Sequence record: ON190024.1
Strand: one strand, 5' to 3'
DNA: 64,000 bases
Of the stretch, positions 4,376 to 62,930 are shown piece by piece (positions within the stretch are counted from its first letter, which is position 1; each line of letters opens with the position of its first letter). A model generated the notes under the pieces. The model ran no database searches and was not told the DNA's origin. It was given only the letters and a program-made list of their open reading frames with translations. Both the position numbers and the translations under genes were made by a program.

Positions 4376-5560
4376 CTAAGCGACGAACGCTACGCGCTGT
4401 ACGATTGTCTGTTTTTCGTCGCGAAACTCGTCGTGAGCTTTTACAGTCGCTTTTACAGTTACTGTAGTGCCGTTCTCAATCTTTTCGCCTTCTTTATCGC
4501 GTAGGCGAGTTGAGCCAAACCACACGATTAGGTTGTTTTGTTCGTCTCGGAAATGATGGATGAACGTGTCGCCATAGTAGCCTTCAGATACGATGACTTT
4601 TTCAAGTGTCACATTGAAGTTTTCACGTTTTTTGATGATACCGACGTGCTCAGATTCAGGCAACTCTGCTTTACGTTCAGCTTCGCGTTTAGCTAGAATC
4701 TCACGCTCTTTTGCTTTGTTAAAAGCTAAGATAGCTGCCGCAATATAACCAGTCTGTTTGTACTCGATGAATGGAGCAGCACATGACGCGATAACATTGT
4801 GCATGAAATCGTTCGTCGCTTCTTGAGTTGAAACCCATTCTAAGATCTCTTTTGCTTGCTCTTCACACTTATCGTAATCGTATTCCGCAAGCATTGCATC
4901 ACGCTCTTCACGCAGTGCTGGTGAGCCAACATTAATCATGTCGATAACCCACTGACGAGTCACACCACCGCCATGGTAACAGCCTTTGTGCTCAACATAC
5001 ATAGCAGCCCATGTAACAATCTGAAGTGCGTTGTATGAGATTTTACGAGAACCACCACCCCATGACTCTTCATCACCGAAATCAGCGATTGCAGTGTAGA
5101 ACGTAGCTAGTGAGTCGATGGATTTAGTTGGTAGGTAGTATTTCAAGCATGAACCGCCAACGCGCATTTCTTCTTTCGTCTCTTCATTTTGAATGACGTA
5201 GGTTACATTACGCTGACGTTTAGAGTTGCAGTGATCGCAAGTTGTGTCACCTAGAAGATGACGATGATTAGTCTCGTTGTTAGAGCGAACAAGATTTGTT
5301 GCGTGGTCAAGTTGAGTCAAGAAAGACCAACCTTTAGTTGACGGGTATTCACCGCGAATAGTAACATCAACGTAATATTCACGATATTTTTGATGATTGA
5401 TGATAATGATTTCTGAGTACACTTCACCGAACTCAAATGTGATTTCAGCAACACCAAGACGTTTTGCAATCTTGTTAGTAGATGCAACACGCGCTTCGAA
5501 CTCGCTCATGTAGATTGATTTGATTGTGTAAGTGTTTTCGAATTTGTTTAGTGAAGTCAT
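4376..5560 (-). CDS. Early hypothetical protein with putative Zn-binding Cys motif and OB-fold-like C-terminus
   Basis: 394 aa; CDHC...VGGSCL; C-terminal VTVKATVKAHDEFRDEKQT. Confidence 0.7.
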   Translation of the reverse strand: MTSLNKFENTYTIKSIYMSEFEARVASTNKIAKRLGVAEITFEFGEVYSEIIIINHQKYREYYVDVTIRGEYPSTKGWSFLTQLDHATNLVRSNNETNHRHLLGDTTCDHCNSKRQRNVTYVIQNEETKEEMRVGGSCLKYYLPTKSIDSLATFYTAIADFGDEESWGGGSRKISYNALQIVTWAAMYVEHKGCYHGGGVTRQWVIDMINVGSPALREERDAMLAEYDYDKCEEQAKEILEWVSTQEATNDFMHNVIASCAAPFIEYKQTGYIAAAILAFNKAKEREILAKREAERKAELPESEHVGIIKKRENFNVTLEKVIVSEGYYGDTFIHHFRDEQNNLIVWFGSTRLRDKEGEKIENGTTVTVKATVKAHDEFRDEKQTIVQRVAFVA

Positions 5561-5775: not shown

Positions 5776-6738
5776 CTATTTGTCTAAGTTAAAAATTGTA
5801 ACATCATCATGAGTCACAAACGATGGTTTGTAACCGTATTGCGGACCAAGGCGATTGAATAACCGCTTGTACAGACTGATTCGTTTCTCGTTCCCATCTT
5901 TGATTGATGTTGCAATTGTCTCACAGTTGTATTTCTTAGCAAAGTTCACTGTTTCATTGACTACCGTTGCAAATACTTTCATTGGGTTTTCAGAAGCAGT
6001 CAGATCATTAGTCCAGCCACTCTCACCGCGAACTTGAAAATGCACCTCAACAGCTTGTACAAACTCAGGCGGATTGAAATTGAAAATCTCATCATTACCA
6101 CCCCAATCAATGCCTCGCGGTATTAGAATGACGCGATAAACTTGTTTACCTATCTGAAATAGACCCTCGATTGGTTTCTTGTCACCCACGGGAACGTCGC
6201 CTTTCGGGTACATGACTTTCGCGGGCTTGTCAAGTGATTCCGTCAAATTAACCGAAGACAGCCACTCGCGCCATGTCTTTTTATTTCCGATTTTCGCAAA
6301 CGGAATATCGTCATGGTCTAGCCACTGTGCCGAGCGGTCATACGACTGAGAAGTATCAAATCCGCGGTAATCATCGCCAACCCATAGCCATTTATGATGC
6401 CAGATTTGATTGACTTGACGTGGCTTAGAAACAGCACCGTCTTTGTAAGTGATCATCATACCCGCGCCTGGTTCCTGTACAGTGTCAAATTCAACTGAGT
6501 CATAGAACGCAACGCCACCTTTTTTATAGTCAATTCGGACAATGTTCGGTGTGAATTGCGGATTTGCTATTGATACTTGAGTACGAGCATCAGCAACCAT
6601 TTGCTTGAACTCGTCAGGAACATAGTCAACGTGAACATATAATGAACCGCCAATGTCTTTACCAACGCCCCATTTGCTGCGTTTTACTGCACTACCTTTT
6701 CGGGTTTTTAATGTAGCGCGTTCAAAAAATATGCTCAT
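5776..6738 (-). CDS. Two-domain late protein: N-terminal domain like the non-catalytic domain of dnd-associated methyltransferases, C-terminal internal-head-protein-like domain
   Basis: VGKDIGGSLYVH, EFDTVQEP, IWHHKWLWVGDDY, IGNKKTWREWL; second half resembles 51582..52463. Confidence 0.55.
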   Translation of the reverse strand: MSIFFERATLKTRKGSAVKRSKWGVGKDIGGSLYVHVDYVPDEFKQMVADARTQVSIANPQFTPNIVRIDYKKGGVAFYDSVEFDTVQEPGAGMMITYKDGAVSKPRQVNQIWHHKWLWVGDDYRGFDTSQSYDRSAQWLDHDDIPFAKIGNKKTWREWLSSVNLTESLDKPAKVMYPKGDVPVGDKKPIEGLFQIGKQVYRVILIPRGIDWGGNDEIFNFNPPEFVQAVEVHFQVRGESGWTNDLTASENPMKVFATVVNETVNFAKKYNCETIATSIKDGNEKRISLYKRLFNRLGPQYGYKPSFVTHDDVTIFNLDK

Positions 6739-51581: not shown

Positions 51582-52463
51582 ATGATTATATTCGAAGACA
51601 TCAATCCGCTTTGTGAAGCATTTGACCGCCCAGCACCTTATAAATGGGATTCTATGTACAACGAAGCTCGATTTACGGTTGGGAACGTTCAGTATGTCGC
51701 GTTTATCAAAGATAATGACACAGCAAGAGGTTTAAGTCTGTATGTGGCATTCCAGCGTCGTGATAACGCAACTGGTCAATGGACTCACTCACTTGCTAAA
51801 GGCTCGCCGAAAGACGCCATGACGGTATTGAGCACAATACTGGCAGCAACATTTGACAAGGCATCAAAAGTTGAACCGAATGAAATTACATTCAGTGCAT
51901 TTCGTGACGCAGATGACGAAGACGCAAATAAGCGTTTTAGGCTATACAAGCGTATGGCTGAGCGATACGCAAAGCAAATGAATTACACAGTTCATATCAC
52001 TGGTAATAGCTTCACACTAACAAACAACAATCCACCTAAGATCAGACGACTCCACAATGACGGCATTCACAAAGAAGATGGACTTACATACGTAATTTTC
52101 CCTGCTTGTAATGCCTTTACATGGGCGAAGATTTTCTGGCTTGACAATGACGGCGATTACATCAAACTTACATTACCGCACGGTCGTATTCACATTGTGA
52201 AAAAATCAAGTGACGTAATTGAAATCGAAGCAATTACACCGAAAGGTCGTTTTGACAATCTAGATTCAGATGAGATTTGGATGTCGATGTTATCTGATAT
52301 TAAAGTGAAAGCTAGAGGCGGAAGCACATTTACTATATCAGAGAAAGGCGCGATTTTAGATGCGGGTGATATGATTTTGTGCGAGCAAGGTACGTTTTAT
52401 TACCTAAGTTCTGAAGATGATTTCAAAGAAATCTGGGGATATGAAATCGTCTCGATTGAATAA
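51582..52463 (+). CDS. Late protein, candidate internal head protein
   Basis: NPLCEAFDRP; domain shared with the C-terminal half of 5776..6738. Confidence 0.65.
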   Translation: MIIFEDINPLCEAFDRPAPYKWDSMYNEARFTVGNVQYVAFIKDNDTARGLSLYVAFQRRDNATGQWTHSLAKGSPKDAMTVLSTILAATFDKASKVEPNEITFSAFRDADDEDANKRFRLYKRMAERYAKQMNYTVHITGNSFTLTNNNPPKIRRLHNDGIHKEDGLTYVIFPACNAFTWAKIFWLDNDGDYIKLTLPHGRIHIVKKSSDVIEIEAITPKGRFDNLDSDEIWMSMLSDIKVKARGGSTFTISEKGAILDAGDMILCEQGTFYYLSSEDDFKEIWGYEIVSIE

Positions 52464-52494: not shown

Positions 52495-54159
52495 TCATGG
52501 TGTCAGAGGACTACGTTCTTTCACTTTGCGGTCTTCGTCGATTTCAATATCAACAACTCGCATGAAGTTAGCGACTTCGGTTAGCTCATGTAAACGGTCT
52601 TGCTTTTTGTAAGCAGACAGAACACCGATTTTCGCTGAATTGTCTTTGACTTTCAAGCGAATCACAGCATCGAACTCGGACAATTGAACCACGTCGGCTT
52701 CGAACATCGTATTACGGTTGATGATGAAATCACAATCGCCTTTCTTCCCGTATTTGCCTGGTGCTAGAACAGGTAACCCGTCAGACTCAATAACAAACAC
52801 AACGTTCAGTTTTCTGTCAGATTCGAGCATATCACGCATAATTGATTTGCTATTCTTGCTCGTCGCGTTGACGATTGTTTTCGCGCTAGATTCAACAAAG
52901 TCACATGCAACAAATGGATCAGTTGATGATGTGATGAACGCAGTTGAAACGAACGCGCCAGATTCAAGAATCGAGCCGACACGTTTGCTAGACATTTCAC
53001 AACCACGATATAGCGTAACGCCATTCGACACCTTACCAGCTTCATAGAAAGCTCGGTCTAAGCGAGAAATTGCATCCCTAACCTTTTCATCACCAGTTCC
53101 GTGAACTAACTCTTCATTGACCTTCCACGAATAACGAGACGCAGAATAGCGAGAAATTGCAGCTTGAGTAAGAGAAGATAGACCAGCATATGAATCTTCT
53201 TGCATCATTTGCAACGATAATTGGTCATATTGCTTCTCAAACGCACGTGAACGGGCTTTTAACAGTGCGCCGCATACTTCGCTAATCAAGTTAGCTTTAA
53301 CGCCCTCAGAGCGTGCAGCGTCGATATATGGGTTCATTCGTTCTGCTACATCAACAAGGTCGATGTTCATATCAACAATTGCTTGAGCAGCGTTAGCCAA
53401 TTTCGTTAGACCGTCAGTTGCTGCCGCTTCTGTTAATTGCTGCTTGATAGATGCACTGACCCGCGCTTCCATTTGTGGCATTTGTAGAATTTGATTTGGG
53501 ACGCGAACGGCAGGGTTTTCTTCTACCCATTGACCTAGAACATCATCTTCATAATCATCATAGCCAGCATCGGCAGTCACGATGATTGTTTTCTTGCTTG
53601 AAATGTCAGTCTCTTTCGCCATTTTAGCAGCAAGAATATTGATTGTTTCTTCGGTTGCTTCGACGAGTTTATCAGCGTCATAGCCGGGTTTCGTGATCAC
53701 GAAGAAGCTGAAATCTTCAGCCATTTCATTATCACCGACGTTCATGATTTTAGTCGTTTCGCAGCCGTATCGAAGTTTCTTGAACAGCGTTTTAACACGC
53801 ATGTCGAACATTTTACCGCTACCGATCTTTTGAATACGCATAGACACAGCGTTGGCACGTGTTTTCAACATGAAACTTTGGATCAATTTAACCAATGTTT
53901 CTTGAAACTTTTCTTGGTCTCCCATGTCACGGATGGTTAATCCGCCTTTTTTGCCTCGCATTGCTGAGACAGTACAGAACCACGAACGTTTTCCACGATT
54001 TCCGATGTCTGATTTTGTTTTAGTTGTGAACGAAACTACAACGTCACGAGCTTCGCCTTTCATATCGATCACAAAGAATTTGTTTTCTTTGGTCGAGCGA
54101 GCAGGATAGTAGTCGTACGTTGCGCTCATGTTTTCAGTTAATTGTTGAAATCCAATCAT
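52495..54159 (-). CDS. alt: Alt-like ADP-ribosyltransferase-fold protein
   Basis: Next to ligase as in T4; Alt-like N-terminus (NAVSMRIQK), TLYRG, ITSS; DCD in place of ExE. Confidence 0.7.
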   Translation of the reverse strand: MIGFQQLTENMSATYDYYPARSTKENKFFVIDMKGEARDVVVSFTTKTKSDIGNRGKRSWFCTVSAMRGKKGGLTIRDMGDQEKFQETLVKLIQSFMLKTRANAVSMRIQKIGSGKMFDMRVKTLFKKLRYGCETTKIMNVGDNEMAEDFSFFVITKPGYDADKLVEATEETINILAAKMAKETDISSKKTIIVTADAGYDDYEDDVLGQWVEENPAVRVPNQILQMPQMEARVSASIKQQLTEAAATDGLTKLANAAQAIVDMNIDLVDVAERMNPYIDAARSEGVKANLISEVCGALLKARSRAFEKQYDQLSLQMMQEDSYAGLSSLTQAAISRYSASRYSWKVNEELVHGTGDEKVRDAISRLDRAFYEAGKVSNGVTLYRGCEMSSKRVGSILESGAFVSTAFITSSTDPFVACDFVESSAKTIVNATSKNSKSIMRDMLESDRKLNVVFVIESDGLPVLAPGKYGKKGDCDFIINRNTMFEADVVQLSEFDAVIRLKVKDNSAKIGVLSAYKKQDRLHELTEVANFMRVVDIEIDEDRKVKERSPLTP

Positions 54160-54320: not shown

Positions 54321-54824
54321 ATGAATGCACAATCAATGACTAACGCTCAAATCGCTGAACTATTCGACATGACAGTTGACGCAAACGGTTTTCAAGCAGT
54401 TGATGCGAAAGGTCGTCGTCATTACCTGACCGACTTACGTCAAAAAGCAATGAAAGCTGCTAAGACGAAGAAAGCACGTAAAGTACGCGCTGAAGCACAA
54501 CCTAAAGCAACTGCCGAAGAACTACTTGCAGAACTACAAAGCGAGTCGTCAGATTTCTGGGAAATTCGCGAATCTCAGCCAGGGATGGACTCTGAAGAAC
54601 ACGGTCTGAACGTGTACGTGACTGCTGGTATGCCTGATCGTCACCGCGTAATGATTCGCTCAAGTGTTTTAACAAACAAAGAGCTTGATCGTGAACTCGG
54701 CTACTTGAAGCCTACAAATCAGAAAGAAGAACAGCGTCGCAAAAAATCGACAATTATTTTCTCAAATCGTTCAGCGAAAGAAATCGTTGAAATCATTGAA
54801 AAAGTGAAGTCAATTAGTGAATAA
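54321..54824 (+). CDS. Early hypothetical protein with basic linker
   Basis: Start reassigned after AAGAGAG SD. Confidence 0.75.
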   Translation: MNAQSMTNAQIAELFDMTVDANGFQAVDAKGRRHYLTDLRQKAMKAAKTKKARKVRAEAQPKATAEELLAELQSESSDFWEIRESQPGMDSEEHGLNVYVTAGMPDRHRVMIRSSVLTNKELDRELGYLKPTNQKEEQRRKKSTIIFSNRSAKEIVEIIEKVKSISE

Positions 54825-54851
54825 TGTGAACTAACTCACGAAAAGTAGTTT

Positions 54852-54889
54852 TCGGGTATTGACAATAACACATCAATACCCGATAATAA
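54852..54889 (+). promoter_or_regulatory. Early promoter within an 11-bp inverted repeat
   Basis: TCGGGTATTGA (54852-54862) / TCAATACCCGA (54873-54883); TTGACA -35. Confidence 0.7.
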
Positions 54890-54931
54890 ACACATCAAGA
54901 CGAGATACGAACTACTTAAAGAGAGAACATT

Positions 54932-55750
54932 ATGACAATCACTAAAGCAGAAATGAAAGCAATCGCACTTGACCTAATGAGCGGTAACAATCTAATGCAA
55001 CGCGATTTGATTGCTGAAGGTTGGTCTTTCGAATTCTCAACTCGCAAAGCTGCACTTGGTGACTGTAACTACCGTACTAAAGTACTACGTCTTTCTGAAG
55101 TGTACTTGAATGCTCGTACTAAAGAAGAGCAAATCAACACAATCACTCACGAAATGGCTCACGCAATCGCGTACACTGATTTCAACGAACGTGGTCACGG
55201 TGCTATCTGGAAGCGTGTGCATCGTCAGCTAGGCGGTACTGCTGAACGTTGTTCAACTGTTTCAAACCCTGAAGCCGTAGACAGCAAGTACGTTGTTTTC
55301 TTCGAAAACGCTCAGGGTGAACTAGAAGTAGTTCAAAAAATGGATCGCATGACTAAGCGTTTTCAACCAGTACACATCAAGTCTCTATACTTGAAAGGTC
55401 GCAAAGCTGAAACTGAAGGTCAACTTCGTTGTGTTTCTTCAGCGACGTTCAAAGCTATCAAAGCTGATTTAGAAGCTAAGAAAGCTGATAACGCTGAAGC
55501 ATCAAAACCAGTTGCACCTAAAGCTGAAAAGAAAGCTGAAGCACCTAAGGCTGCTAAGAAAGTTTCAGCACGCGGTCAGGCTGCTCGTGACGCAATCGCA
55601 GAAATCGTGATGACTACTACTCATAAAGGTTGCAAGTCAGTGTCTTTCGAACAGCGTGGTAAATACAAAGACTGGTACATCATGATTGAACTAGAAGCTC
55701 ACACAATCGAACAGCGTCTAGATACTTTCAAAAAGAAACACAGTTTGTAA
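54932..55750 (+). CDS. SprT-like zinc metalloprotease
   Basis: LGDC, ITHEMAHA (HExxH), GHGAIWK. Confidence 0.85.
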   Translation: MTITKAEMKAIALDLMSGNNLMQRDLIAEGWSFEFSTRKAALGDCNYRTKVLRLSEVYLNARTKEEQINTITHEMAHAIAYTDFNERGHGAIWKRVHRQLGGTAERCSTVSNPEAVDSKYVVFFENAQGELEVVQKMDRMTKRFQPVHIKSLYLKGRKAETEGQLRCVSSATFKAIKADLEAKKADNAEASKPVAPKAEKKAEAPKAAKKVSARGQAARDAIAEIVMTTTHKGCKSVSFEQRGKYKDWYIMIELEAHTIEQRLDTFKKKHSL

Positions 55751-55759
55751 TCTCTCAAT

Positions 55760-55781
55760 TAGCCCCGAAAGGGGCTTTTTT
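55760..55781 (+). terminator. Terminator
   Basis: AGCCCC-GAAA-GGGGCTTTTTT. Confidence 0.85.
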
Positions 55782-55787
55782 AGGTTT

Positions 55788-55858
55788 GAGGCGGAAAAAT
55801 TCCGTCTCATCTTAGTAGAATTAGTACTTTTAGTGATATTAGAAGTATTAGTAAGATT
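55788..55858 (+). repeat. 71-bp iteron-like element, copy 2
   Basis: TTAGTAGAA TTAGTACTT TTAGTGATA TTAGAAGTA TTAGTAAGA at 55812-55856. Confidence 0.95.
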
Positions 55859-55907: not shown

Positions 55908-56147
55908 ATGATAACGATATACACAATTCCTAACTGTGACGGGTGTCGTCACGCTATCGCCCTCTGTAAGTTCAAACACGTTCCGTATACTGTAATCGAG
56001 TTACAGTCGCAGACTGACATCGACCAATTACATCAAAAGCTTGGTGATAATCGCAATATTCGCGTTCCTCTGGCTATGCATGGTGACACATACATCGGTC
56101 ACCTGCCTGAATTGAAGAAATGGGTTGATGAGCAGACGTATAAATAA
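55908..56147 (+). CDS. Glutaredoxin
   Basis: CDGC, RVP, YIG motifs. Confidence 0.85.
   Translation: MITIYTIPNCDGCRHAIALCKFKHVPYTVIELQSQTDIDQLHQKLGDNRNIRVPLAMHGDTYIGHLPELKKWVDEQTYK
56139..56146 (+). promoter_or_regulatory. Late promoter
   Basis: Perfect TATAAATA. Confidence 0.75.
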
Positions 56148-56205: not shown

Positions 56206-57102
56206 ATGACTGTATCTAATAGTAACGGTTTACCAGACATTGTTACTGTTCAAAAACGACTATATCCGCTGATCTTTACGGAAATCGTTTCTGAACAGCC
56301 AACAAAGCAACCCGTTGCAACTGCTTACGGCTTTAAAGCTGTACCTGAAGCTGATGACGGAAGCGGCTGGACTCAATTTGGGTTTAGACTTGATCGTTGG
56401 TATGCTCAAGTTGAATCTTCAAAAATGAAGACTGAAATCTCTCTTGAAACGCTGCAAGATATGCAAGCACTTGGTGTTAGTAATTCAGTGATCGTAGACT
56501 CACTAGCTGACCAAATTGCCGATGAAATCAATACGTCGATTATCAGTGCGTTGAATAGCATTTCAACTGTTGGTACTGCACTAACCCTGACGGGTAATAC
56601 TGATTTTGAAAAAGGTCAAGATCTTTATACGAAAGTACACCTAGCAGCGTCTGAAATTGAAAAAACAACTGGTTGTAAAGGCACATATGTCGTTGCGGGC
56701 GGTAAATGTTTCGGTTATTTGACTGGTTGCGGTGTTGTACAGCGAGTTGGCGAATCTGATGTTTACAAAGCATGGTCTGGTTTATACATCGTACACGACA
56801 AATACGCAACAAGCGATTACGTGACTGTAGGTGTTAAGAAAGACATGGGTGATTATGAAATCTCAAGTCTAGTATTCAGCCCGTATCAGTTCGACCAAGC
56901 GAATGACGGCGCGATTGCTTATCAATACAAGGGCACTGACCCGAAATCATTCCACCCTGTGTATGGTGTTATTGCTCGTTACGCACTAACTGTTCCGCCA
57001 CTAGAAGACAATCAGACTGGTGCAGTTGAGATTGATTGGTCGAACTTAGGTGCGCTTGCTAATAGCTCAAAGCTTTCATACACATACGCAGTAACAGTAT
57101 AA
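56206..57102 (+). CDS. 24: Short gp23/gp24-family capsid protein, probably vertex protein gp24
   Basis: QPTKQP, SLETLQDM, IADEINTSI, FSPY, SFHPVYGVIARYAL parallel gp23 motifs. Confidence 0.7.
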   Translation: MTVSNSNGLPDIVTVQKRLYPLIFTEIVSEQPTKQPVATAYGFKAVPEADDGSGWTQFGFRLDRWYAQVESSKMKTEISLETLQDMQALGVSNSVIVDSLADQIADEINTSIISALNSISTVGTALTLTGNTDFEKGQDLYTKVHLAASEIEKTTGCKGTYVVAGGKCFGYLTGCGVVQRVGESDVYKAWSGLYIVHDKYATSDYVTVGVKKDMGDYEISSLVFSPYQFDQANDGAIAYQYKGTDPKSFHPVYGVIARYALTVPPLEDNQTGAVEIDWSNLGALANSSKLSYTYAVTV

Positions 57103-57110
57103 GGTGTGAC

Positions 57111-57623
57111 ATGAAAAATCATTATGTAGATAATAAAGCTCTATACGCATCACTATGCGAATGGAAAGACGAAATGAATAAGAATCCTGATGCGACAATC
57201 CCAGTACCTGATGTGGTCGCGATTAGCATCATGAAGATTAGCGAGAACCTGTCTCGCCGTTACAACTTTAGTGGTTACACTGCTACGTGGAAAGAAGAAA
57301 TGATTGGTGACGCAATCGAACATTGCTTGCGTTACATCAAAAATTTCGATACTGATAAGTACAATAATCCACACGCTTACATCACTCGTATCTGTTTCAA
57401 TGCGTTCGTGCAACGCATTAAGAAAGAAAGAAAAGATACAGCGATTAAATATAAAGTATTCTTATGTGATTCGTCTAACTACACAGTTGAAGGCGAAGAG
57501 ACTGATTTCGAGTTTCTTCAGCAAATGTTAGAGCGTGTCAATTCTTACGAGTCTGGCAAAACGGCTAAAGCTCAACCAGATGAACAGAAAGAACCACTTA
57601 ACTTACAGAAATTTTACGATTAA
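57111..57623 (+). CDS. 55: Late sigma factor gp55
   Basis: HYVDNK, NFSGYT, EMIGDAIE, NPHAYIT, FNAFVQRIKKE. Confidence 0.95.
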   Translation: MKNHYVDNKALYASLCEWKDEMNKNPDATIPVPDVVAISIMKISENLSRRYNFSGYTATWKEEMIGDAIEHCLRYIKNFDTDKYNNPHAYITRICFNAFVQRIKKERKDTAIKYKVFLCDSSNYTVEGEETDFEFLQQMLERVNSYESGKTAKAQPDEQKEPLNLQKFYD

Positions 57624-57632
57624 GGAATTAAC

Positions 57633-59078
57633 ATGTTAGGTAACTTTGACTCATTTCTGAGTGAAAATCGCCGTCAAACTCAGGGTGGAAAAATCTACCC
57701 TAAGTTTGGTCAAGTTATTGTTGAGCTAGGCACTGCATCTACTGAGTTCAGCAAAGGCAAAGGCGTTGAAACAACTATCGGCATGATGGAGAAGGCAAAT
57801 GAGCTTAAATCTATCATGAACACTAAACTGGCTGAAGATAAAAACGTCGATGAGAAACATTTCGACATCAATCTGAGCGAGAACGTAAGCACGGTTAACC
57901 TGCTTATGGAAAACGAATTCTTGGCGCTGCCAGCTCATGAGCTACAGCAAGTCAAATCAATGATCATGTGTACTGAAGCACGTCTTCCTAGCATCGTGAT
58001 TAAAGGCGGTTCATTGGATCAAGTTGTATCTGAAGCAACGAAACTAGGCTACAAGAAAAGTGACATTCACGTTGTTTTCCCGATGCGTGAAATGAAAATC
58101 AATCTTGCTGACTCTGACAAGCTTGTTATTGAATCTCTATCAATTGACGACAATTCAGCGTCTGAGATTCTTTCAATGGCTGAAAACATCGAGCTTGGTG
58201 ACGTTTATGTGACTGTAGAATCGGTTGATTCTAAGGCTGAACTGTCTGAAATCACTGAACTGAAGATTAAATCTGGTAAAAATGCGCTGACACTAGCTGC
58301 ACTTAACCGCAAGATCATGGATCAGTTTATCGTGAAAGAAGCGAAAGAAGTTTCATATGCACGTGAGCGCAAAGAAGACACTGGTCTCCCAATGCTTGAA
58401 GGTTTCAAGGCATACGATCTGAAACAGAACATCACCATGATTGAACATGCTCAGAACGCATTCACAAAAGAGATTACAGTAGCTCCGCTATCTTCGACTG
58501 CGTGGCAAAATCTTGTTGATGTTAAAGAAGCTTACTTCGATAACGGTTGGAAACTGAAGCACAACAATACAAGCATCGTTCTAACAAATGCAGAACACGC
58601 AATGCGTGCTGGTCGTGTTTGTGAAGAATATCGAGTCGAGCTATCTGAAGCAGGTTATCCTCTTCTTGATATGATCGCAATGATGGAAAGCAAAGGCATG
58701 ACTCGCTTTGATTGTAAATCATTTGCTGAATCAATGATGAAATTCGACGGCTGTGTTACGCCAGAGCGCCAGACTGTGACTGCATTTGTTACTGAATCTG
58801 CTAGTAATCGCGTATTTCACCCGAATATTATGTCAAGCCTACGTCCTGTGACCGAAATGGTTGATGATGTTGACGGTCTAATTCGTGCGCTTGCTAATGA
58901 TCAGTTCAGTACGTTCAAAATCGGACAATCATTCTCTGAATCAATGCTTGACCAAGAAACGCTATACTCTATGATGGAAAGCATTGTTTCTGATGGTGTT
59001 GATGTATCAGTGGACGGGACTTTGATTGAATTCAAAGTGAATGCAACCAATTACCTAATCAATATCGACATCAAATAA
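57633..59078 (+). CDS. Candidate internal head protein with degenerate P-loop-kinase-like N-terminus
   Basis: MLGNFDSFLSE; GGKIYPKFGQVIVELGTASTEFSKG. Confidence 0.55.
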   Translation: MLGNFDSFLSENRRQTQGGKIYPKFGQVIVELGTASTEFSKGKGVETTIGMMEKANELKSIMNTKLAEDKNVDEKHFDINLSENVSTVNLLMENEFLALPAHELQQVKSMIMCTEARLPSIVIKGGSLDQVVSEATKLGYKKSDIHVVFPMREMKINLADSDKLVIESLSIDDNSASEILSMAENIELGDVYVTVESVDSKAELSEITELKIKSGKNALTLAALNRKIMDQFIVKEAKEVSYARERKEDTGLPMLEGFKAYDLKQNITMIEHAQNAFTKEITVAPLSSTAWQNLVDVKEAYFDNGWKLKHNNTSIVLTNAEHAMRAGRVCEEYRVELSEAGYPLLDMIAMMESKGMTRFDCKSFAESMMKFDGCVTPERQTVTAFVTESASNRVFHPNIMSSLRPVTEMVDDVDGLIRALANDQFSTFKIGQSFSESMLDQETLYSMMESIVSDGVDVSVDGTLIEFKVNATNYLINIDIK

Positions 59079-59086
59079 GGTGAATC

Positions 59087-59734
59087 ATGAAACAATTTTG
59101 TAATTTTTTAGCTGAAGTTCAGAAATACAGTTCAGCGGCTACGTCGATTCGCGGTAAAGAAGTTGCTGCATTGGTTAAATTGTTCAAGTCAGGCATGTTC
59201 GTGCCTGGCGGAACAGCACTTGACTACGGCGCGGGCAAATACGCTCGTAATGCTGAATTTCTTCGCAGTGAAGGCATTCGCACTTACGCATACGACAAAT
59301 TCAATGGGACATCGGCTGATGGTTGGAACGCAGTTAGCTTAACTATCCCAAATGGTGAGACATTCGATACCGGCTTCACGTCATACGTATTGAACGTTGT
59401 TCCTGAAGAAATCGAAGCAGAAATCATCCGTGATGTTGAGTCTCGTACACGCGGTAAAGTGTTCCATATTACACGCGGTACTGACATCACTCAGACTGTA
59501 TTCAACGTAATCAGCGGTAAGAGCAAGAATGACGTAATGATGCAATTCATTGCTCAAGAATATCCAGAGATTTACGGTCAGATTGTCGCGAACGGTGGGA
59601 CGAAAGAATTGGCTAAAGAGATTGCAACCCGTGGAGTTGTAACAGCTAAAGACAGTTTCCAACGTATTCCAGACCTATCGAAATACGGTTACAAGAAATC
59701 TGGTTCAGGTGCTTCGGTAGTGTGGACAAAATAA
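59087..59734 (+). CDS. SAM-dependent methyltransferase, dnd-associated family-like
   Basis: LDYGAGK motif I, YAYDKF, SYVLNVV; N-terminus MKQFCNFLAE. Confidence 0.8.
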   Translation: MKQFCNFLAEVQKYSSAATSIRGKEVAALVKLFKSGMFVPGGTALDYGAGKYARNAEFLRSEGIRTYAYDKFNGTSADGWNAVSLTIPNGETFDTGFTSYVLNVVPEEIEAEIIRDVESRTRGKVFHITRGTDITQTVFNVISGKSKNDVMMQFIAQEYPEIYGQIVANGGTKELAKEIATRGVVTAKDSFQRIPDLSKYGYKKSGSGASVVWTK

Positions 59735-59751
59735 TTTTAATTTATTTGAAT

Positions 59752-59787
59752 AAAAGGGTTGCTTCGGCAACCCTTTTTGCGTATTAT
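59752..59787 (+). promoter_or_regulatory. Terminator hairpin containing an early promoter
   Basis: AAAAGGGTTGC-TTCG-GCAACCCTTTTT; TTGCTT-17-TATTAT. Confidence 0.8.
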
Positions 59788-59822
59788 AGCTACATCGAAA
59801 CGAGATACAAAGAGAGAACGTT

Positions 59823-60083
59823 ATGATGATTACTGAATACCTACGCAATAATACAGTTCGCGAAATGCTAGATTGCCCTGCTACTTCGCTTGCATTCTGG
59901 TCACAAGAATTCATGATCATCCCTGATGAAGATCTAACTTTTGTTGAAAACGATGAAAACGTTCTAATCAAGATGAACGAAATCGAAGTTGTTGTGCCGT
60001 ACAATATGACGCTTGAAGATCTTGAGCAAATGTTCGGTGACGCACTAAGTGAACATGTTAGAAAGATTAAAGAACGTGTTTAA
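59823..60083 (+). CDS. Early hypothetical protein
   Basis: Conserved early leader. Confidence 0.7.
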   Translation: MMITEYLRNNTVREMLDCPATSLAFWSQEFMIIPDEDLTFVENDENVLIKMNEIEVVVPYNMTLEDLEQMFGDALSEHVRKIKERV

Positions 60084-60107
60084 CATCGGTTTATCTCATA
60101 CTATAAT
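60079..60107 (+). promoter_or_regulatory. GTTTA-class promoter
   Basis: (G)TTTAAC-17-TATAAT. Confidence 0.7.
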
Positions 60108-60130
60108 ACTCAAACATTGAAGGAAATATT

Positions 60131-60589
60131 ATGATCTACATTGAAACAAGCAACATCCTTTCTGATGACACTCTCGGCTTTGCAATGGCTGGCGCGCCTC
60201 AAGTTGATAAACTTGAGAAAAAAGAGCGTGACAATGTGCTTAACAAAGCTGTTGAAGTCAAGCTCTACGAACGTCTTCCATCGACTGCTGTACTTGATTT
60301 TCTCTTGAATCAAAAAATTCCCTTCATCGCCGTACTGAGCAAAGTAGAAGTTATTGCTGAACAGCAACGTGCATGGTTTGATGCAATTGGCAAGCACTTG
60401 AATATTGATGTGATGTACACAGATTTTCAAGAAGTCGAGCACAATCTCGATACGCTGTTGATTGCTGAAGATCGACATGAACTGAAACGTCACGCTCAAA
60501 ATAACGGTAGAATTCTACCATTCACAACTGAAACACAATTTCAATTCATTATCGATCATCTATCTTCGGTCGACAATAAGGAGCAGTAA
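60131..60589 (+). CDS. Hypothetical protein
   Basis: AAGGA SD; 152 aa. Confidence 0.7.
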   Translation: MIYIETSNILSDDTLGFAMAGAPQVDKLEKKERDNVLNKAVEVKLYERLPSTAVLDFLLNQKIPFIAVLSKVEVIAEQQRAWFDAIGKHLNIDVMYTDFQEVEHNLDTLLIAEDRHELKRHAQNNGRILPFTTETQFQFIIDHLSSVDNKEQ

Positions 60590-60939
60590 TGCAAGAGAAG
60601 CCAGATTTACTCAAAGACGACGAAATTGTTGATGTAGTCGAAGATCAAGAAGTTCTTGACTATCTTGATGAACTGCAAGCTCAACGTCGTGTGCTTGTTG
60701 AGAAAGAAGCACATCGTCGTATCAAGAAAAACTCGCGTGAGATTAAACGTCTGCGTAAACATGCTGAAAAGTGTCTAATCGAAGGTAACAAAGCGGGTTA
60801 CGTCTACGCAATCGGCAAACTTCGTTCTATTACTGGTCAGACAGTCGGTGACGATGTACTTGAAACGCTATGGGAAACGAGTCGTGAGCAAGTACTAACA
60901 ATCGCACGCTCATTTGCAGAAGCGAAAGCAGGTCAATAA
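60589..60939 (+). CDS. a-gt.4: a-gt.4-like protein
   Basis: REIKRLRKHAE...YVYAIGKLR...W..SR.Q; synteny between 55 and 47. Confidence 0.7.
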   Translation: MQEKPDLLKDDEIVDVVEDQEVLDYLDELQAQRRVLVEKEAHRRIKKNSREIKRLRKHAEKCLIEGNKAGYVYAIGKLRSITGQTVGDDVLETLWETSREQVLTIARSFAEAKAGQ

Positions 60940-61403
60940 TGGACATTAAATCAGGCGCTGGTTATCCAGCCAGTGCGCTGTCAAACTTTGCGCCTCACGC
61001 ATTCGTTGTGCGTGGTGTTGAGTGTGCTTCTATGGAAGGGTTTCTTCAGTCATTGAAGTTCAAAAACCCGGAAATGCAACGTGAAGTCTGCAAACTTGTG
61101 GGTAAAGTTGCTAAAGCACGCGGTGCGAAGAAAAACTGGCAACGCACTCAGACACTTTATTGGCAAGGTGAGCCGATTCAGCGTGCTTCGGTTGGGTATC
61201 AAACGTTGCTCGATGATGCATACGCTGCATTAGCTCAGAACGTGAAATTTCAAAAGGCACTGCTTGCTACTGGTAAAGCTACCCTTACACATTCAATCGG
61301 GCGTAAGAAGCAGGCAGAGACGGTTTTAACTGTACAAGAATTCTGTAGCCGATTGACAGTGATTCGGGAACATTTGCAGAATGAAGCTGATGAATGTAGT
61401 TAA
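60939..61403 (+). CDS. NADAR-family protein (T4 gp30.3-like)
   Basis: ALSNFA, SMEGFLQSLK, TLYWQG, ALLAT...LTHS, TVLT..EF. Confidence 0.85.
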   Translation: MDIKSGAGYPASALSNFAPHAFVVRGVECASMEGFLQSLKFKNPEMQREVCKLVGKVAKARGAKKNWQRTQTLYWQGEPIQRASVGYQTLLDDAYAALAQNVKFQKALLATGKATLTHSIGRKKQAETVLTVQEFCSRLTVIREHLQNEADECS

Positions 61404-61893
61404 ATTAATGATTCGTGCGATTGCTCGTGCGAAGAAAACAGACAAGCCTATCGTATACATTGACATGGACAACGTGCTGGTTGACTTTCAGAGTGGGATA
61501 GATGCTCTTTCTATCTGGGAAAAGAATCAGTATGAGGGTCGATATGACGAATGTCCGGGTATTTTCGCTCATATGAAGCCGATGAAAGGTGCGATTGCTG
61601 CATTTGAAGTGTTGAACAAACACTTTGATTGCTATATACTGTCTACCGCCCCGTGGGATAATCCCGGGTCATGGCAAGATAAGCGTCTGTGGGTTGAACG
61701 TTACTTGGGCAAGGGTGCTTACAAGCGACTGATCTTGTCACATCACAAGCAGTTAAACTTCGGTCATTATCTCATCGACGACCGCACGAAAAACGGTGCA
61801 GGTGAGTTCATGGGCGAACACATTCACTTTGGCACAGACGAATTCCCTGACTGGTTTTCGGTTGTGACTTATCTTACGAGTGAGAACAAATGA
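61381..61893 (+). CDS. 5'(3')-deoxyribonucleotidase (NT5C-type HAD)
   Basis: DMDNVL, LSTAPW, DKRLWV, LIDDR. Confidence 0.88.
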   Translation: MKLMNVVKLMIRAIARAKKTDKPIVYIDMDNVLVDFQSGIDALSIWEKNQYEGRYDECPGIFAHMKPMKGAIAAFEVLNKHFDCYILSTAPWDNPGSWQDKRLWVERYLGKGAYKRLILSHHKQLNFGHYLIDDRTKNGAGEFMGEHIHFGTDEFPDWFSVVTYLTSENK

Positions 61894-62930
61894 AAGTAGC
61901 ATTGCTAGGTGACTTGCATATCGGCATCAAAGATGACGACATGTGGGTACAAAATTACCAGCGCAAGTTCTTCGACTTTATGTTCGCGGAACTAGAAGAG
62001 CGCGGTGTAAAAGAAATAATTCAACTCGGTGACTGGTTTGACGTACGCCGAGGCGCAACGCAAGAAACACTTATGTTTCAGCGCACGTATCTGAATGGCA
62101 TGTTGAAAGGTCACAATACACACGTTCTAGTGGGTAACCATGACATGCACTTGCGTGAATGCATTGTACCGAATACTCCGTATGAAGTATTGAGCGTTGT
62201 ACCAGACGTTACAATCTACGAGCACCCGACGACTGTTGAGTTTGATGGTGTTAAAATTGACATAATTCCGTGGATTTGTAAAGAAAATGCAGTCGAAATC
62301 GACGAATTCATTAAAAATTCAACGTCTGAATACTGTGTAGGTCACTTTGAGTTGAACGGGTTTGAATTTCATAAAGGTCAAAAAGCAACTGGCTGTCTTG
62401 ATGCTGGTTTCTTGAAGAAATACAAACAAGTTTGGTCTGGACACTTTCATACTCAGTCTGAAGCGGGTAATATCAAGTATCTCGGTACGCCGTATACATT
62501 GACTCTTGCAGATGCTGATGATAAACGTGGTTTTTGGTTGTTTGATACTGAAACACACGAAATGGAGTTCATTGAGAACCCCGATTGTTGGCACACCAAG
62601 CTGTATTTTGACGCTGAAACGTTTGACGCGAAAACAATCCCGTCATATGAAAATCGCAACGTCAAGATTATCGTTGAACGTCGTTCAAGTGACAAGCGTG
62701 AAATCTCCTTTGATGTAGTCGAAGATCGCATTGCGCAAATTGCACATGCGTGTCAGACTCTCGATGAGCTAGACATCAAAAAAGACGTAGCAGATGACAT
62801 CAAATCTATTAAAGATATTGATGATTATGTTGCTGAATATGCAGATACTCTAGACGAATCGTCTGAAGTCAAGTCAAAAGTCAAAGCAATCTTCTCGGCG
62901 CTTCGTGCTGAAGCTCAGGAGAATGCGTGA
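61890..62930 (+). CDS. 47: Recombination nuclease gp47 (Mre11/SbcD-like)
   Basis: GDLH, GDWFD, GNHD, SGHFH. Confidence 0.95.
   Translation: MKVALLGDLHIGIKDDDMWVQNYQRKFFDFMFAELEERGVKEIIQLGDWFDVRRGATQETLMFQRTYLNGMLKGHNTHVLVGNHDMHLRECIVPNTPYEVLSVVPDVTIYEHPTTVEFDGVKIDIIPWICKENAVEIDEFIKNSTSEYCVGHFELNGFEFHKGQKATGCLDAGFLKKYKQVWSGHFHTQSEAGNIKYLGTPYTLTLADADDKRGFWLFDTETHEMEFIENPDCWHTKLYFDAETFDAKTIPSYENRNVKIIVERRSSDKREISFDVVEDRIAQIAHACQTLDELDIKKDVADDIKSIKDIDDYVAEYADTLDESSEVKSKVKAIFSALRAEAQENA

Follow-up and report, generated by a model that had tools for sequence, protein, structure and literature searches.

To our knowledge, the injected proteins of T4-like phages consist of small inhibitors and one enzyme, the ADP-ribosyltransferase Alt. 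The T4 internal proteins IPI, IPII and IPIII, small DNA-binding or inhibitor proteins, share a ten-residue leader of the format M-K-x-aromatic-x-x-F-(I/L)-A-E, and their delivery system of capsid-targeting leader, prohead protease and ejected internal proteins is classical. Alt, the precedent for an injected enzyme (PMC5512222), owes its loading into the head to an N-terminal propeptide, enters the cell with the DNA, and acts on host proteins before phage transcription. In phage P1, the DarB protein brings a methyltransferase domain into the head, is delivered with the DNA and acts in anti-restriction (PMC5512222). The locus described here lies at positions 59087-59734 of the window, the whole 64-kb stretch (64,000 nucleotides) of sequence record ON190024.1 that was analysed, and its enzymatic cargo is new: the gene is predicted to encode a class I S-adenosyl-L-methionine (SAM) methyltransferase behind a T4-type leader. 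That this enzyme is packaged in the head, ejected with the DNA and active at the start of infection is a reading we consider moderately probable.

The window is part of a KVP40-type Vibrio myovirus (Straboviridae, Schizotequatrovirus); over positions 57000-62000 its sequence equals that of Vibrio phage PVA8 (181000-186000; 100% identity) and agrees with KVP40 at 99.3%. The gene corresponds to KVP40.0066, a 'hypothetical protein' in the KVP40 annotation, and belongs to PHROG 14016, which is labelled 'unknown function'. In the literature, no description was found of a methyltransferase on a T4-type leader or of the PHROG 14016 family, nor any paper combining 'capsid targeting sequence' with 'methyltransferase' or mentioning TIGR04096. 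The reading frame divides as follows.

59087..59734, + strand: methyltransferase open reading frame (ORF), ATG start, 215 amino acids plus stop codon.
59087..59116, + strand: codons 1-10, encoding MKQFCNFLAE, a leader of the capsid-targeting type; the prohead protease is predicted to cut after Glu10 (L-A-E/V).
59117..59734, + strand: predicted mature methyltransferase and stop codon, residues 11-215, ~22.4 kDa, isoelectric point (pI) 9.1.

The likeness of the first ten residues to a capsid-targeting sequence, remarked on in the first-pass annotation, is genuine. T4 ipII and ipIII both begin with MKTYQEFIAE (read from NC_000866); the methyltransferase has the same residue at M1, K2, F7, A9 and E10, with conservative exchanges at two more positions (Y4F, I8L). 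In mutational work on IPIII, residues 4 and 7 were assigned to targeting and residues 8 and 10 to processing (review PMC9026906), and all of these determinant positions are retained here as F4, F7, L8 and E10. When the first ten residues of every Met-start ORF of at least 50 amino acids in the PVA8 genome (n=2228) were scored against the T4 leader, the methyltransferase ranked first of the 2228, with a score of 21 (mean -7, standard deviation 6.5). The orthologs show free variation at positions 3, 5, 6 and 9 and retain M1, K2, L8 and E10, together with a hydrophobic residue at position 4 and an aromatic one at position 7. An [LIVMF]-x-E site ending at residues 6-12 is present in 54% of 188 family members, compared with 16% of control ORFs, and some distant members possess even more T4-like leaders (MKSFSEFITE, MKQFSEFLSE). 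The leader stays at the extreme N-terminus even where another domain is inserted before the methyltransferase (P0121, and P0122 with a GNAT domain), so in these sequences it appears to behave as a separate module. The machinery that would read such a signal is encoded in the same genome: gp20, 67, 68, 21, 22 and 23 of PVA8 lie at 119-124 kb and include a gp21-type protease and the gp22/67/68 core. N-proximal [LI]-x-E sites occur in gp21, 22, 23 and 68, and none is present in the 55-aa gp67. Cleavage at the predicted site would produce a mature N-terminus from Val11 reading VQKYSSAATSIR. As with the T4 internal proteins, the mature product is basic and its gene lies in a variable region; it differs from them in being an enzyme fold of ~205 residues with no sequence similarity to the mature T4 proteins, and its cleavage and ejection are predicted.

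The presence of the family in virions is documented for a close relative. Purified particles of phage 6E351A were analysed by tandem mass spectrometry in a 2025 Schizotequatrovirus study (PMC12028318, Table S4). The 80%-identical ortholog VP6E351A_0103 (QZI87378.1, 216 aa, 24 kDa, PHROG 14016) was detected in these virions (two replicates; 31 and 79 spectral counts); it is listed as 'hypothetical protein' and has no mention in the text of the paper (PMC12028318), and this uncommented row of a supplementary table is the only experimental trace of the methyltransferase family. The same table contains an Alt-like ADP-ribosyltransferase (122/233 counts, 63 kDa), the portal (165/280, 60 kDa) and the prohead protease (17/28), together with the metabolic enzymes dUTPase (7/10), FolE (13/7) and NAMPT (16/23). 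Normalized to mass, the counts for VP6E351A_0103 (79/24) are comparable to those for the Alt-like protein (233/63) and portal (280/60); the metabolic enzymes in the table reach at most half the value of VP6E351A_0103. With the leader match and this ortholog in purified virions (PMC12028318, Table S4), the first-pass claim that the protein is packaged is very probable, and delivery together with the DNA is probable on the same two grounds.

These counts also bear on a more ordinary explanation, by which the protein is a cytoplasmic enzyme acting on a small molecule, tRNA or protein, its detection in virions is carry-over and its leader resemblance fortuitous. Other non-structural enzymes do appear in Table S4, the top fold matches are small-molecule methyltransferases (BchU, CysG, DhpI, toxoflavin methyltransferase), a sigma-70-like promoter upstream of nrdH makes early expression of the transcription unit likely, and a neighbouring leader-like protein, the product of KVP40.0065, has an ortholog that went undetected in virions. 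We nevertheless judge this explanation unlikely: besides the counts per kDa, the best T4-leader match of the whole genome is the methyltransferase itself, the leader determinant positions are conserved through 50% sequence divergence, homologs in distant T4-like phages are surrounded by head or tail modules, and the products of other leader-bearing genes are likewise detected in virions.

Those other products extend the leader comparison beyond the methyltransferase. PVA8_310 (MKLFTEFYQE, PHROG 13195; 203869-204890 of the PVA8 record) is the second-best T4-leader match in the genome, and it is 72% identical to VP6E351A_0134 (562 aa), which was detected in virions with 58/109 counts. KVP40.0290, read from an upstream ATG (MKNLKSFMEE, PHROG 11974), corresponds to VP6E351A_0357, which was detected with 18/4 counts. 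This gene lies outside the window at 54688-55806 of the PVA8 record, where its annotated start is 54709 and an ATG with a GAGGA site is present 21 nt upstream; the upstream start is probably correct, to judge from the PHROG 11974 alignment, which begins at profile position 1, and from the length of 371 aa annotated for the 6E351A ortholog. PVA8_328 was considered as the ortholog of virion protein VP6E351A_0154 and was rejected, no BLASTP similarity being found between the two. Two further genes in the window deserve mention here, each assigned by synteny and size, and each with an [LI]-x-E site near the start of its product.

52495-54159, - strand: ortholog of the virion-detected Alt-like ADP-ribosyltransferase VP6E351A_0095, with the start MIGFQQLTE (also that of the PVA8 version).
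51582-52463, + strand: ortholog of the PHROG 6387 virion protein VP6E351A_0094, with a product beginning MIIFEDINPLCE and continuing across the junction with AFDRPA; the 6E35.1a paralog p0057 has the same junction (...LNE/AFDRPA).

Several observations weigh against an injected methyltransferase. Detection alone is no proof of specific packaging, because cytoplasmic enzymes (dUTPase, NAMPT, FolE) are also found in the proteome. The KVP40.0065 homolog opens with MLGNFDSFLSE, a start that resembles the leader and is shared by 6E35.1a, and its ortholog is absent from the 6E351A virion list (Table S4, PMC12028318); a leader-like start is therefore not sufficient for packaging. About 45% of family members have no obvious leader, and a strict ten-residue leader pattern occurs genome-wide at about chance frequency (2 first-Met ORFs). 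Because the strict pattern is uninformative at this scale, similarity ranking was used instead, and it is in this ranking and in conservation that the leader signal resides. No Pfam or NCBIfam threshold is reached by the query, whose best structural matches are generic small-molecule methyltransferases with template modelling (TM) scores of 0.4-0.57. Finally, cleavage, the location inside the head and ejection are inferred steps, and catalytic activity is predicted from the fold.

The fold itself is well supported. The AlphaFold2 (AF2) model has a mean predicted local distance difference test (pLDDT) score of 90.4 and a predicted TM score of 0.85, with only residues 1-18, which include the leader, poorly defined (pLDDT <55). 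In a Foldseek search, 234 PDB matches were obtained at E<=0.001, and among the matches listed nearly all are class I SAM methyltransferases, many at probability 1.0, with TM scores of only 0.4-0.57; they include BchU, CysG, DhpI, toxoflavin N-methyltransferase, ChlM and METTL6. The fold and cofactor site are thus well supported; the enzymes matched act on very different substrates and give no indication of the substrate class. Of the columns in an alignment of 53 diverse family members, 18 are invariant, and the three sequence motifs on which the first reading had relied were all found in place, followed by two that are specific to the family.

59222..59239, + strand: motif I (SAM-binding loop), DYGAGK, residues 46-51; D46, G48 and G50 invariant in the 53 sequences.
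59285..59302, + strand: end of beta-2, YAYDKF, residues 67-72; D70 invariant, following strand E65-69 in the model.
59381..59401, + strand: beta-4 and the residues after it, SYVLNVV, residues 99-105; V101, N103 and V104 invariant, strand E93-99 in the model.
59465..59485, + strand: family-specific motif HITRGTD; H127, R130 and D133 invariant, candidate acceptor-site residues.
59657..59671, + strand: family-specific motif FQRIP; Q192, R193 and P195 invariant, with a putative role.

In the model, motif I (L-D46-Y-G48-A-G50-K) directly follows strand E43-47, and D70 occupies the usual position of the acidic residue that binds the SAM ribose. Pfam family PF13489 (Methyltransf_23; gathering threshold 27 bits) is matched at E<=0.01 by 47 of the 53 relatives, some of them above 27 bits (P0121, 32.5), and the query has no match at E<=0.1. 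The model, the invariant cofactor motifs and the Pfam matches of relatives bear out the earlier view of a methyltransferase-fold protein, and one depositor of a homolog had already chosen the name 'S-adenosyl-L-methionine-dependent methyltransferase'. By fold and intact cofactor motifs, the KVP40.0066 protein is thus well supported as a predicted class I SAM methyltransferase. It shares with small enzymes of the Methyltransf_23/UbiE/TehB type the fold, motif I, the acid after beta-2 and a beta-4 of the form 'FD..F.S.VLNVV', and differs from them in a beta-3 region reduced to a loop (residues 71-92), in the motifs GGTSI, HITRNxD and FQRIP, and in a helical insert at residues 133-182. Two other leads were set aside: manganese catalases, the only matches of a single-sequence PDB search (E ~0.08), were treated as noise, and flavivirus NS5/FtsJ-type methyltransferases, found by a PDB profile search (E 0.38) through the helix before motif I, were rejected because the lysine expected there is not conserved and the remainder does not match.

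Homologs were found by tblastn in 49 phage records, all of Vibrio phages, at 48-100% identity. Large protein collections contain 232 related clusters at 90% identity, and profile searches retrieved 131 representatives (50% identity) at E<=1e-30 and 195 at E<=1e-10. With 49 phage records, hundreds of homologous clusters and 18 invariant columns, the gene is not a chance ORF. A scan of 185,579 bacterial and archaeal species, each represented by a single genome, found no full-length cellular relative and just four weak matches (29-36% over ~100 aa) to generic methyltransferases of 157-229 aa; the family is in practice viral.

The distant relatives lie on T4-like metagenomic contigs, on which homologs of several other KVP40 proteins (portal, prohead protease, major capsid protein, sheath, DNA polymerase, helicase) are also encoded. 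The methyltransferase homolog is directly upstream of the portal gene in L018, 2 kb from gp23 and gp21 in L022 and L023, and adjoins gp4 and gp18 in L020, L025 and L026. The two genes upstream of the homolog in L016 and L019 share its type of leader (MRFKEYLE, MKLEKFLNE). In L021 (IMG/VR contig 3300005470_000003), 6-7 unrelated neighbouring ORFs, the methyltransferase homolog included, share a leader of the form ..(E/D)II(D/N)(L/I)(F/L)xE, at 5285, 6354, 6850, 9495, 9902, 11381 and 17192. To judge from the sequences, this looks like the pattern expected of a cargo set using one targeting signal, and may represent a lineage-specific targeting or cleavage signal.

Recurrent fusions join the family to GNAT acetyltransferase domains (P0122, P0141) and to DUF5661 (P0123, P0125). 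One member is embedded N-terminally in a protein of 1110 aa (P0150), and more remote relatives of the SAM-binding half are found within phage proteins of 693-1067 aa (L031-L033); these proteins of 693-1110 aa contain no other informative Pfam domain. A further partner is encoded in the window itself.

5779..6738, - strand: PHROG 16075 protein, 320 aa; its ortholog VP6E351A_0018 is virion-borne, with 9/14 counts.

The 165-aa N-terminal domain of this protein is fused to the methyltransferase in P0124 and P0144, is encoded by the adjacent gene in L005, and overlaps the methyltransferase 3' end in L025. It has the invariants G28-K29, Y36, H38 and H116-H117-K118-W119 and an AF2 model with pLDDT 94.9, and is without a fold match in the PDB (best E 0.23) or a sequence match, so it gives no functional lead. 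VP6E351A_0018 was flagged 'Defense?' by the authors of the virion study (PMC12028318), as was the KVP40.0065 ortholog. As clues to the substrate, the fusion partners (GNAT, DUF5661 and the PHROG 16075 N-terminal domain) were set aside.

A host protein, RNA or small molecule is a more likely target than DNA. A DNA methyltransferase would either act in cis, shielding the phage DNA on entry as P1 DarB does, or methylate a DNA modification, for example by converting dPreQ1 to a methylated 7-deazaguanine. DarB is the precedent for DNA protection by a packaged methyltransferase (PMC5512222), the mature protein with its pI of 9.1 is basic, like the T4 internal proteins, and the nearest named NCBIfam model is titled 'DNA phosphorothioation-associated'. 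Schizotequatroviruses do carry 7-deazaguanine DNA, and nucleoside liquid chromatography-mass spectrometry of 6E351A gave dPreQ1 at 295 Da with a methylated derivative unmentioned (PMC12028318). Methylation of dPreQ1 was ruled out as a candidate reaction, 6E351A DNA showing the unmethylated base, and the gene lies 34 kb from the deazaguanine cluster. The protein contains no (D/N/S)PP(Y/F/W), PC or ENV motif, and its 215 residues leave no extra or target-recognition domain; a DNA substrate is unlikely on these grounds. Its beta-4 motif reads S-Y-V-L-N-V-V-P-E, in which we take VLNVV to be UbiE-like. DarB is a protein of more than 2000 aa that joins an EcoKI/TaqI-like adenine methyltransferase to an SF2 helicase and is loaded by the Dar pathway, in contrast to the small protein here with its T4-type leader, and no methyltransferase-helicase fusion of the DarB type was seen among family members. 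Nor is the family uniformly basic: the median pI is 7.9-8.4, and 22-30% of members fall below 6. As a clue to the substrate class in general, pI was discarded as non-discriminating. Taken together, a DNA methyltransferase appears improbable, and the first-pass proposal that the protein may protect incoming DNA or interfere with Dnd or restriction-modification systems stays a conjecture in which DNA is the less likely substrate. The invariant cluster of H127, R130, D133 and Q192-R193 suggests, from conservation, an acceptor that may bear a carboxylate or phosphate group.

The first-pass annotation had also placed the protein in the phosphorothioation-associated family TIGR04096, an attractive assignment that is wrong. 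In a hidden Markov model search the query has no match to this model at E<=1, and ten relatives score 11.4-27.3 bits, far from the curated cutoff of 150. The assignment has a factual kernel: TIGR04096 is the NCBIfam model that relatives match most often (43 of 53, best E 6.6e-08). These alignments are confined to profile positions 14-88 of 478, a stretch of 75 positions that covers the compact generic SAM-binding half with motif I, a short beta-2 and a 'VLNV'-type beta-4; nothing is alike beyond position 88, and the 478-position model describes a dnd-linked bacterial gene rather than a 215-aa phage protein. Phosphorothioate-based systems are present in Vibrio, and a family member counteracting such a defence (Dnd or Ssp) would fit that setting. 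No dnd or phosphorothioation gene occurs among the neighbours (24, 55, a-gt.4, 47, 46), and beyond the window the PVA8 annotation contains no product so named; within the window, only these neighbours were screened for dnd genes. PADLOC returned no match for the methyltransferase, the 0065 product, the PHROG 16075 protein or two relatives. The cellular relatives show no dnd context, being just the four weak matches with unannotated neighbours. A role in counteracting phosphorothioate-based defence is accordingly the least credible of the explanations considered, and very improbable.

At the locus, the gene order is nrdH-24-55-KVP40.0065 (a 481-aa ORF)-methyltransferase-two small ORFs-a-gt.4-30.3-NT5C-like nucleotidase-47-46, in agreement with the original placement between gene 55 and a-gt.4/47/46; a-gt.4 in the window corresponds to Pfam DUF2654. 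The further claim that the gene fills the T4 alpha-gt slot holds in part. In the T4 record the order is 55, a-gt.5, a-gt.4, a-gt.3, a-gt.2, mobB, a-gt, 47.1, 47, so the same variable 55-47 interval is involved; the methyltransferase gene is on the 55 side of a-gt.4, whereas T4 a-gt is on the 47 side, where the window has 30.3 and the nucleotidase. The predicted transcription unit comprises the following elements.

56139..56146, + strand: predicted T4-type late promoter, an exact match to the consensus TATAAATA, upstream of gene 24.
56206..57102, + strand: gene 24 (head vertex protein), first in the unit; Pfam Gp23 at 3.2e-47, PHROG 138 and KVP40 annotation.
57111..57623, + strand: gene 55 (late sigma factor); PHROG 234 at 1.6e-58 and KVP40 annotation.
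57633..59078, + strand: KVP40.0065 homolog, 481 aa, acidic (pI 4.9), PHROG 14490; 73% identical to 6E35.1a p0107.
59077..59083, + strand: ribosome-binding site AAGGTGA, 3 nt 5' of the methyltransferase ATG, read from the sequence.
59752..59779, + strand: intrinsic terminator with an 11-bp stem, TTCG loop and T run; RNAfold -16.5 kcal/mol.

The TATAAATA site is the sole exact or one-mismatch late-promoter site directly 5' of the unit 24-55-0065-methyltransferase, whose genes are spaced by 8-9 nt, and the hairpin at 59752-59779 is predicted to close the unit directly 3' of the methyltransferase gene. Predicted co-transcription with head gene 24 from this promoter, together with the packaging evidence already given, would equally suit an enzyme resident in the prohead that methylates core, internal or capsid proteins during assembly and is trapped there rather than ejected. 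T4-like phages form the same head in its absence, the leader belongs to the type found on dispensable, ejected T4 proteins, and the published proteomics reports no modifications. We know of no methylated head protein in the schizotequatrovirus group. A role confined to assembly therefore seems decidedly unlikely.

For the injected enzyme, the following sequence of events is hypothesized. The leader (residues 1-10) would bring the precursor into the prohead core, where a gp21-type prohead protease would cut after Glu10. The basic mature enzyme of ~22 kDa would remain in the head with the DNA and be ejected into the cell alongside the genome. There it would use host SAM to methylate its target at the start of infection, before phage gene expression. 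This course would be analogous to that of Alt, with a methyl group transferred from SAM in place of ADP-ribose from NAD+, and with an unrelated fold. By that analogy, an ejected enzyme that modifies a host component right after DNA entry may be the most economical reading.

Phage proteins that enter with the DNA act before phage gene expression, and so determine how the phage first meets the defences and machinery of its host. If the proposed reading is true, a methyltransferase arriving by the same route as Alt would add a new chemistry to the injected proteins of T4-like phages. The broad-host-range Schizotequatroviruses, which are used against aquaculture vibrios, carry the gene as part of their core set. 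Since other virion proteins are predicted by the leader as well, the leader rule makes it easy to compile candidate ejected proteins from uncultured T4-like phages. More tentatively, as a serious possibility that we would stop short of calling probable, the family of at least 131 clusters at 50% identity may be a widespread one of marine T4-like phages, leader-loaded and injected, that would form a second class of enzymatic injected effectors beside Alt and, possibly in concert with the virion-borne PHROG 16075 domain or with the GNAT domains fused to some members, strike a host protein, RNA or signalling molecule in the first seconds of infection.

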